NCBI RefSeq assembly: GCF_052425735.1
Contig: NC_135770.1
Span: forward strand, 33,480,001 to 33,544,000
Source: Oculina patagonica
Lineage: Eukaryota
Reading direction: 5' to 3'
Length of the DNA: 64,000 nt
Shown here: one piece after another, positions 13,601 to 15,254 of the stretch
How positions within the stretch are numbered: position 1 is the stretch's first letter
Layout of the letters: each line of letters begins with the position of its first letter
Translations under genes and position numbers: made by a program
Notes under the pieces: model-generated
Databases searched by the model: none
What the model was told of the DNA's origin: nothing
Seen by the model: the letters and a program-made list of their open reading frames with translations, nothing else

Positions 13601-15254
13601 GGGGTAGCACAGTGGTGAGAGCACTCGCCTCCCACCAATGTGACCCTAGCTGTTTCGATTCTGGCCCTGTGCCATATGTGGGTTGAGTTTGGTGTTGATT
13701 CTCATCCTTGCTCTGAGGGTTTATCTCAGGGTTCTCCAGTTTTCCTCCCTCCACAAAAACCAACACTCCAAATTCCAATATTTTGATCTTTGATGTACTT
13801 ACACATCCTAATGAGCTCCTGAGAGAGAGAGCTCTTCTGTGTAACATGGGTAAATTTAAGTGTGGCAAAGATTCTGCATACTTCTACTGCTCCATATAAC
13901 TTTAGAAGATTCACTTGGATATTCGCTATAATATTGTTTTTTTTTTTTTTAACTACAGGATATAGATGACTACCACAGCCAGATTGTTTACAGGGACCCC
14001 GACCTGTTTGCCTCAGGAGTGTCAGATCTTTCTTCTTCCACGTTGTCGTACTTGAAACAGCTTCTTTGTGAGAGCCCTCAGTTTGGGCGAGCTGTGATCA
14101 ATGGCCTCACTTCCAAAGGGAAAGGGTTTTTGAAAAACAACCAGTTGTTACAGCAACTTTATATAGATCTCATCAATGAGCAGTTAAAAGCCTTGGACTC
14201 CAATGTTGTGGAAGCAGATCGTGTCGACTCCGCTGCAGTTGGTACAGAGGAAAGCACTGCAGATTCTGCAATCAAGCGATGCAAATTTATCTATCAAATG
14301 CTCTCTTACATGAACCCAAGCCCTGAAATGCTTAGCCTATCCAAGCGTTTAGATGATCTTTTTAAGAATCTCATATGCCGAACTCTCAATCATGAACGTA
14401 GTCACCTCGACAAAGGCACCTTGTATTCCTGTCTTCTCAACCAATCCACAACTTATCTGATTGAAAAGTTCTGTTACATTGAAAACCAAATGCGATTTTT
14501 AGTCGAGGGCCATCCTGAATTGCCGCTGTCCAGGACAACTCCACAAGGATTTAAACGGCAAGCTGGAGTAGCTGGTCCCTTTGTTCAAGTTTGTTATGCA
14601 CAGTCTTTTATGGAAGATAGAAAAGAAGCTTGGCAGTTCCTGTTTTTTCATGCTTTGGATGGAAGTCACATCTTGGAAAACATAGTGGTAAGATTTACTG
14701 GCAATTTTTTTTATCAAAATCAATTTAAAGGGTGCTGCTTACATGAAGTAAGCGACTATCTCGACTAGTTTCCAGTCACGTGCTGAGTCAATGACACAGA
14801 AAATAACAAGATGGGGGAAGCCTTACACCAAATGTCCTTCCAGAATAGACGTGAAAATTTATAGTTTTCTTATAGTTTTCTTATGATTTCCATGCTTTGG
14901 ATGGAAATCATATCTTGGAAAATATAGTGGTAAGATTTACTGGCAATTTTTTTATCAAGATCAATTTAAATTTAGTATATAGTCTGTGGTAATTTATAGT
15001 CTTTTTCAGGTAAAATGGCACACAAAGGAAACTACTTGTGTGTTAGTACTTTCCTGAGTAAACAGGGACCTCTTTGCATCATTAATTTTTCCCTACTCAT
15101 TCCTAATTAAAGTCTTTCAAGATATTCAAGCCAAAAACATCTATCCTTATGACAAAGCGAGGTTTTGAAATCAACATGCATGCAATGTCTTTGACTAGTT
15201 GATACTTTCATTCAAAAAATCAAATCAGTGCAAAAATTATTAATATTATTATTA

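Follow-up and report, generated by a model that had tools for sequence, protein, structure and literature searches.

The signature of MMBIR is a multi-template patchwork which contains short inverted pieces from ≤100 bp away, shows microhomology and comes with a gain in copy number, as summarized for the MMB-TI alleles of the MMBIR/FoSTeS type (PMC8421209). These alleles are known from disease and from tumours. Pol-theta end joining also yields patchworks by iterative, microhomology-primed synthesis, and its inserts are generally <25 bp and templated by the flanks (PMC12426944). Minimal pairing, snap-back copying and stutter are typical of the templated insertions made in this way, which draw on the immediate flanks and are usually accompanied by deletions (PMC12426944; PMC7165422). 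The name TSIP is used for patches captured from distant regions, which are often transcribed; TSIPs of class 1 have a poly(A), a polyadenylation signal and a TTTT/A target site, and those of class 2 are without a flanking duplication (PMC5110952).

The locus studied here is the gene ZFYVE26/spastizin of a coral. It is clear that in one coral lineage intron 4 of this gene holds a fragment of the gene's own promoter together with a second exon-4 donor, both from a single old accident. We think it likely that this accident was one ancestral serial template switch of the MMBIR/FoSTeS type in the germline, and that the resulting insertion is old, lineage-specific and most probably silent in the intron. 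As in MMB-TI (PMC8421209), the source is intact, consecutive switches took place at microhomologies of 2–3 nt, an inverted piece comes from ≤100 bp away, and a multi-template patchwork is combined with a gain of the flank. Unlike the disease and tumour alleles, the coral case appears as a fixed evolutionary scar in the germline. In addition, its main patch was copied in direct orientation from the gene's own promoter at a distance of only 4.3 kb, and the duplicated flank happens to hold a splice donor. The insertion is probably best viewed as a very clean example of a known mutation class and as a neutral-looking structural variant.

The window, that is, the whole stretch of 64,000 nucleotides that was analysed, contains the N-terminal exons of the host gene, and by the orthology of these exons the gene is ZFYVE26/spastizin. 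The product of exon 1 (ATG at 10608) matches P0043, which carries the JGI name 'zinc finger FYVE domain-containing protein 26'; in exon 4 no Pfam family was found. The sequencing runs consist of contigs, so transcription starts are not readable from them, and one run of the same species label, X14, is RNA-like. Its contigs lead from exon 1 (to ~10817–10819) through 174 nt to an exon starting at 13956–13959. Two conserved blocks, ~12674–12776 and 13022–13142, are candidate exons between exon 1 and 13959, and with these as intervening exons it is reasonable to speak of exon 4 and intron 4. Record 15 of X14 aligns to 14686 and continues with 111 nt which are placed elsewhere; this exit at 14686/7 is consistent with splicing to exon 5, and contigs of the same run are present in the bin 15452–15635. 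At the 5′ side the X14 contigs begin at ~10498, and the source segment of the duplication thus comprises ~80 nt of core promoter followed by the initial 60 nt of the 5′UTR, so that at least 10498–10560 is transcribed within it. This segment is the best-conserved upstream part, being 83% identical to the relative L006 as compared to 73% for 10307–11129. Further upstream a gene of an MFS-type transporter lies on the minus strand. The promoter between the two genes is putatively bidirectional, and X14 is without contigs at 10300–10483.

When the window was compared with itself, 10417–10560 matched 14728–14871 without gaps at 136/144 positions and with an offset of 4311 nt. The alignment reproduced the 133/140 identity which the original prediction had given for 10421–10560 and its copy 4311 bp downstream. 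As the source segment is intact, the event was of the copy-and-paste type. In the 529-Mb assembly the 144-mer has two occurrences and no more, both at the spastizin locus, and the same holds for the 85-mer flank described below. The promoter copy is thus no high-copy repeat, and a dispersed repeat or a mobile element was rejected as its origin.

Direct comparison of both segments bears out that the E-box GTCACGTG is kept in the intron-4 copy and that TGCCGAGTCA of the promoter reads TGCTGAGTCA there, as had been claimed. The NF-E2/AP-1-like TGCTGAGTCA arose by a CCGAG>CTGAG change, i.e., a CpG>TpG transition in the copy. The CRE had been described as lost from the copy. In fact TGACGTAA of the promoter corresponds to TGAAGTAA in the copy, but the polarity of this claim is probably backwards, as position 10436 is A in the copy and in the promoter of the outgroup L006 and C in the promoter of the window. 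Judged by this one outgroup, the TGACGTAA 'CRE' is probably a gain of the promoter that postdates the event, rather than a site which the copy has lost.

The second duplication concerns the splice site. The stretch 14645–14729 matches 14887–14970 at 79/85 positions with one 1-nt indel in a poly-T, and each of these 85-nt copies comprises the 3′-terminal 39 nt of exon 4, the GTG/GTAAGA donor and ~42 nt of the intron. A second copy of the exon end with its own distal donor had been predicted and is present. Both donors are identical from −6 to +24 (30 nt). Flank copy 1 is collinear with the single copy in the relatives L007, L011, L005 and L006, and flank copy 2, whose start can be placed at 14887 or 14891, runs into 14971–15044, which is collinear with positions 1123–1194 of L007. 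The flanking 85-nt segment is a copy-number gain behind the break.

The promoter copy and flank copy 2 are separated by 19 nt of filler, all of which have local templates, and no base of the insertion is left without a template. The filler begins with the 11-nt stutter which had been noticed before, ATAGTTTTCTT standing twice in tandem at 14861–14882. The 8 nt after the stutter are not untemplated either: a 12-nt inverted match which had gone unnoticed reveals their template. The inverted piece copies sequence 8 nt downstream, either by snap-back or from the opposite strand. The hairpin it forms has a folding energy of −10.4 kcal/mol (z = −6.1); folding of the homologous place of flank copy 1 gave no such hairpin. 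The inverted piece is statistically unusual: perfect 12-nt hairpins with a loop of ≤10 nt occur at 5 of 63,813 positions of the window, and in 2.6% of trials a random 8-mer filler had a template no further than 100 nt away. Every junction of the insertion shares 2–3 nt of microhomology, namely AA at 14728–29, TT before the re-copy, TAT at 14882–84 and CAT (or TTT.CAT) at 14891–93. Entry into the promoter copy by way of a microhomology had been foreseen correctly, but its extent is AA (2 nt) and not AAG: at the empty site T comes after TTTAAA, and the third base is therefore not common to both. All features are compiled in Table 1.

Table 1. Positions of the host exons, of the duplicated segments and of the filler pieces in the window
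Feature	Position	Strand	Description
Source segment	10417–10560	+	Conserved core promoter and first ~60 nt of the 5′UTR of ZFYVE26/spastizin; 94% identical to the second place
Exon 4	13959–14687	+	Open frame; phase-0 end ...HALDGSHILENIV; proximal donor GT 14688–89
Flank copy 1	14645–14729	+	Exon-4 tail at its original place, with the proximal donor and the adjoining 42 nt of intron 4
Promoter copy	14728–14871	+	Direct orientation; 142 new nt (14730–14871); absent from intron 4 in all relatives examined
Re-copy	14872–14884	+	Exact 13-nt match to 14861–14873; 11-nt backward slip, ATAGTTTTCTT + AT
Hypothetical in-frame cassette exon	14876–14929	+	54 nt, 18 residues FSYDFHALDGNHILENIV; deduced from the sequence
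Inverted templated piece	14882–14893	+	TATGATTTCCAT, exact 12-nt reverse complement of 14901–14912; 7-nt loop
Flank copy 2	14887–14970	+	Last 39 nt of exon 4 (14891–14929), distal donor GT 14930–31 and 40 nt of intron
Exon 5	15499–15669	+	171 nt, phase 0-0, follows ttccAG; acceptor for either donor

The closest available relatives were found by a search with the exon-4 open reading frame and their contigs were then compared to the window (L005, L006 and L007–L011). Across exon 4 the four Logan contigs L007–L010 are 91.8% identical to the window, and L011, L005 and L006 reach 85–90%. All these contigs carry one exon tail, one donor and one intron start only. In L007 and L011 the single 85-mer directly joins the homologue of 14971–15044 (...ATCAATTTAAA/TTTAGTATATAG...). 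No promoter-like sequence was found in intron 4 of the relatives L005–L011, and the sole match of L006 to 14732–14868 is its own promoter. In the DNA runs X2 and X8, which bear two other coral labels, both flanks are covered and 14716–14899 is without contigs. The proposed check for presence or absence in related species thus had a uniform outcome: none of the relatives examined carries the insertion. Both the empty site and the relationships among the sequences are direct observations, and from the empty site it follows that the window carries a derived insertion of 241 nt, 14730–14970. This insertion is most likely lineage-specific and old.

The insertion itself was seen in the haplotype of the window, i.e., in the assembly and in one DNA run (X1) which probably stems from the source individual. 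The sample X1/X13 alone holds most words of the stretch, all other runs having values of ≤0.13, and it is probably the assembled colony. The runs that hold parts of the stretch include coral metagenomes. At many sites of the promoter and of intron 1 about half of the depth of X1 belongs to alleles of other coral labels. These mixed alleles mean that the locus is heterozygous with two deeply diverged haplotypes, which differ by 2.5% in part of exon 4 and by ~8% in the promoter. The depth is 28.7 in the bin 14716–14899 as compared to 41–54 in the exon-4 bins; summed contig depths are noisy, and this difference weakly hints that the insertion is on the reference haplotype only. A junction-specific 27-mer and a 25-mer revealed no carrier among the JGI metagenome contigs, where the species may be absent, and an exact look-up of the read-through open reading frame 14019–14765 returned no record from collections which may not hold the species.

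The two duplications have diverged to a similar degree, the promoter pair by 5.6% and the flank pair by 6–7%, as expected of a single event. Polarization with outgroups places changes on both members of each duplicated pair. Derived states are found in the promoter copy at the sites matching 10426, 10442, 10473 and 10510 and in the promoter of the window at 10436 and 10539; in exon 4 it is copy 1 that carries a derived AAT>AGT (N>S), and copy 2 retains the ancestral GGAAATCAT. For the promoter the polarity is based on L006 and a few alleles from the sequencing runs. The search with the exon-1 product detected only L006 and the contigs L012–L015, which are ~82% identical and too distant to polarize the eight differences, so that L006 is the one outgroup behind these calls. 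Since the split from L007 the lineage of the window has accumulated 15 synonymous changes in the 243 codons of exon 4, which by a rough count of sites corresponds to ~0.09 per synonymous site as compared to ~0.03 per lineage between the copies. The event is thus roughly a third as old as the split from L007. The ratio of synonymous to non-synonymous codon changes in exon 4 is 15/7 in the lineage of the window and 17/9 in the lineage of L007, and judged by these counts the insertion allele shows no apparent relaxation of constraint in this exon.

The divergence of the copies also bears on the question whether the insertion is real. An artefact of assembly or of chimeric reads is hardly credible. 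It is true that the independent support is thin and comes from one DNA sample, X1/X13, which is probably the assembled individual. However, a chimera would be equal to its sources, whereas each duplicated part has diverged from its source by ~6%, and the changes are spread over both copies; for this reason we discount an artefact. In addition, X1 contigs cover the bin 14716–14899, and an error-free X1 contig starts at 14924, at the 30-mer common to both donors, just as a k=31 graph breaks.

The structure can be read as the record of consecutive switches. The nascent plus strand would have reached 14729 in intron 4, where its terminal AA would have re-primed on the promoter 4.3 kb upstream and 142 nt (10419–10560) would have been copied. 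A slip back by 11 nt, primed by TT, would then have led to the re-copying of 13 nt. Next, TAT would have re-primed on the opposite strand of exon 4, from which 9 nt would have been copied in inverted orientation. Finally, CAT would have landed on the correct template 81–85 nt behind the point of departure. By this landing the exon-4 tail would have been doubled together with the splice donor and the intron start, giving the net insertion of 241 nt at 14730–14970. Four template switches are counted, one of which yielded the short inverted piece, copied from a site no more than ~100 bp away. The multi-template patchwork together with the gain of the flank matches the published signature of MMBIR (PMC8421209). 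That the structure is a repair scar had already been proposed, and this view gains support from the empty site of the relatives, from the templated filler and from the microhomologies of 2–3 nt. The order and the direction of the switches given here are a parsimony reading, and we infer the polymerase and the reason for the choice of the promoter. The promoter may have served as template because it was open or single-stranded, or because it was physically close; a template 4.3 kb away fits a preferential use of open or nearby DNA, in what is one case only. As every inserted base is assignable and the relatives have kept the empty site, the insertion offers a natural case, unusually easy to read, of a template switch that ran in several steps and was primed by microhomology in an animal germline.

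The same scar might have been formed by end joining at a double-strand break, either by Pol-theta (TMEJ) or by NHEJ that captured a patch of DNA or cDNA. Ends overlapping by ~85 nt, as from staggered or sister-chromatid breaks, would then have been bridged by the promoter patch and by templated filler. We regard this as rather unlikely. Classic footprints of Pol-theta are seen in the 13-nt re-copy and in the snap-back hairpin of 12 nt, each primed by 2–3 nt, and the 13-nt and 9–12-nt pieces agree with the size and the local templating of its inserts (PMC12426944). The same cannot be said of the 142-nt piece, which comes from a distance of 4.3 kb. Moreover, an 85-nt duplication of the flank is unexpected from a simple two-ended break, and the templated insertions of Pol-theta usually go along with deletions (PMC12426944; PMC7165422).

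Capture of a distant patch would resemble a TSIP, as a short stretch, transcribed in part, was copied from a distant source that is itself intact (PMC5110952), at least 10498–10560 of the source being transcribed. Yet neither class of TSIP accounts for the insertion. Class 1 was rejected, since there is no A-tract at the ends of the insert, neither a poly(A) nor a polyadenylation signal is found, the target reads TTTAAA/TTTAGT in place of TTTT/A, and the flank is duplicated over 85 nt. This long duplication also led us to reject class 2 (PMC5110952). Furthermore, the source reaches ~80 nt further upstream than any RNA contig, no known single transcript spans it, and together with the missing poly(A) this makes an RNA-templated (cDNA) origin unlikely. 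A strand invasion guided by homeology was considered as well: the end of the promoter piece and the intron sequence 14986–15006 agree at 17/21 positions over 21 nt. This guide was rejected, as joining at this place deletes 14971–14985 and gives no duplication of the flank. We retain the serial template switch of the MMBIR type as the preferred explanation.

Regarding the function, we suggest that the insertion most likely sits silently in the intron and that normal splicing proceeds from the proximal donor. Two equal donors in cis nevertheless invite the question whether splicing of exon 4 is disturbed. When two equal 5′ splice sites compete in cis, the donor nearer to the acceptor is often preferred. 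The donors of the locus are identical from −6 to +24, and on general grounds the acceptor-proximal one, that is, the distal donor, might be chosen. Either exon 4 would be extended or a new cassette exon would be formed, and we consider such an altered splicing unlikely. In the case of the extension exon 4 would grow by 242 nt and run into the TAG at 14766, and the allele would be an NMD hypomorph; the prediction that use of the distal donor from exon 4 includes TAG 14766–68 is correct as sequence logic, the open reading frame extending over 14019–14768. In the case of the cassette, an outcome missing from the original prediction, the acceptor-like TTTTCTTATAG (AG 14874–75), made by the stutter and followed by T, would together with the distal donor bound the 54-nt exon, whose frame is open and phase-compatible. 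The 12-bp hairpin 14882–14912 lies inside this exon and could mask it. The constraint on exon 4 equals that in the relative and speaks against a long-standing loss of function; the lack of relaxed constraint is an argument for continued production of normal mRNA by the allele. The exon-4 contig of X14 leaves at the proximal donor, but this run comes from a non-carrier, as it differs by 4–8% from the window in exon 4 on both alleles.

A further possibility is that the promoter copy acts as an intronic promoter. Intronic alternative promoters, for example TE-derived ones, likewise combine a promoter-like segment with a usable 5′ splice site before a coding exon; unlike these, the coral source is the gene's own promoter and the insertion lacks conservation. 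According to the original prediction, transcription would start in the copy, by our placement at ~14809, and splicing would join the distal donor at 14929 to exon 5, so that an N-terminally truncated spastizin would result. The copy does retain the most conserved block GACTAGTTTCCAGTCACGTG..GAGTCAATGACAC with one change and includes the position that matches the 5′ end of the RNA contigs, an intact donor with 30 nt identical to the real one follows 120 nt further on, and the structure has persisted long enough for a divergence of 6%. We still judge this alternative first exon to be very improbable. The insertion is absent from all relatives examined, and the ~4–5 derived changes in the 144 nt of the copy are about as frequent as those in the neutral intronic flank (~2–3 per 85). 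Neither the candidate first exon nor exon 5 has an in-frame ATG, and a TAG at 14873–75 is in the frame leading into exon 5. The 142 nt also come without the rest of the 5′UTR and without the wider promoter context. In the RNA-like run X14, a non-carrier, no contigs fall on 14716–15451.

Taken together, the chance that the MMBIR-type accident created a new working part, be it an intronic promoter with first exon or the 18-residue cassette with its stutter-made acceptor, appears small, and a silent insertion in the intron is preferred. If true, either part would be a documented birth of an exon or a promoter by MMBIR-type repair in a coral. In any case template-switch events can move regulatory and splice signals and thereby provide raw material for new exons and promoters. 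If the source colony is heterozygous for the insertion, it would offer a natural allele-specific test of the competition between identical 5′ splice sites.

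The probable source individual, represented by the DNA run X1, carries two very divergent haplotypes and is heterozygous over window 10300–15800, the interval over which this run was compared with X2 and X8 (DNA runs of two other coral labels) and with X14 (an RNA-like run of the same species label). When the contigs are placed on the window, the haplotypes of X1 differ at ∼8% of sites in 10307–10541 and at 2.5% in 14272–14506. The alleles of the non-reference haplotype also occur in runs that bear the labels of two other coral species. Hybrid ancestry, introgression of a haplotype, or trans-species polymorphism may explain this pattern.

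Within the invariant block of the promoter (window 10462–10485), GTCACGTG precedes CCGAGTCAATGAC, and GTCACGTG is kept both there and at 355–380 of L006, a contig of a coral relative. GTCACGTG agrees at 8 of 10 positions with GTCACGTGAC, the TFEB "CLEAR" element; such a CLEAR-like motif would be apt for a lysosome/autophagy-pathway gene. The 5′ UTR also harbors an 18-codon upstream ORF (ATGGGGGAAG...TAG, 10500–10556), which was duplicated along with the promoter piece, the second copy lying at 14811–14867. This upstream ORF is not conserved, as L006 reads ATGTAG at its position.

Conservation between the window and L006 extends down to 10307. On the minus strand, 10343–10331 (ATGGAAG/GTAAGT) resembles a short first exon, perhaps that of the upstream transporter gene; no RNA contigs were seen at this candidate exon.

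Downstream of the insertion, at a distance of 16 nt, GTGGTAATTTATAGTCTTTTT (14986–15006) agrees at 17 of 21 positions with GTGAAAATTTATAGTTTTCTT, the 3′-terminal part of the promoter piece. This likeness is at odds with a simple invasion model, and it is probably due to chance in AT-rich sequence.

The repeats of introns 1, 3, and 5 reach summed contig depths of up to 10^4–10^5 in every coral run. In L005, a contig of another relative, a non-LTR retrotransposon is located just upstream of exon 4, and the same intron in the window is without it.

Neighboring gene and repeat features (window coordinates, except for the L005 element)
Feature	Position	Strand or location	Evidence
MFS-type transporter	7057–9051	−	Pfam MFS_1, E = 4e-9
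Candidate 5′ exon, perhaps of the MFS-type transporter	∼10329–10343	−	ATGGAAG/GTAAGT
Very high-copy repeats	11220–12690, 13240–13800, 15636–15800	Introns 1, 3, 5	Summed contig depth
Inverted-repeat, MITE-like elements	11931–12550	Among high-copy intron repeats	
Near-perfect 60-nt palindrome	15695–15816	Among high-copy intron repeats	
Non-LTR retrotransposon in L005	1712–5438	−	Exo_endo_phos and RVT_1 ORFs
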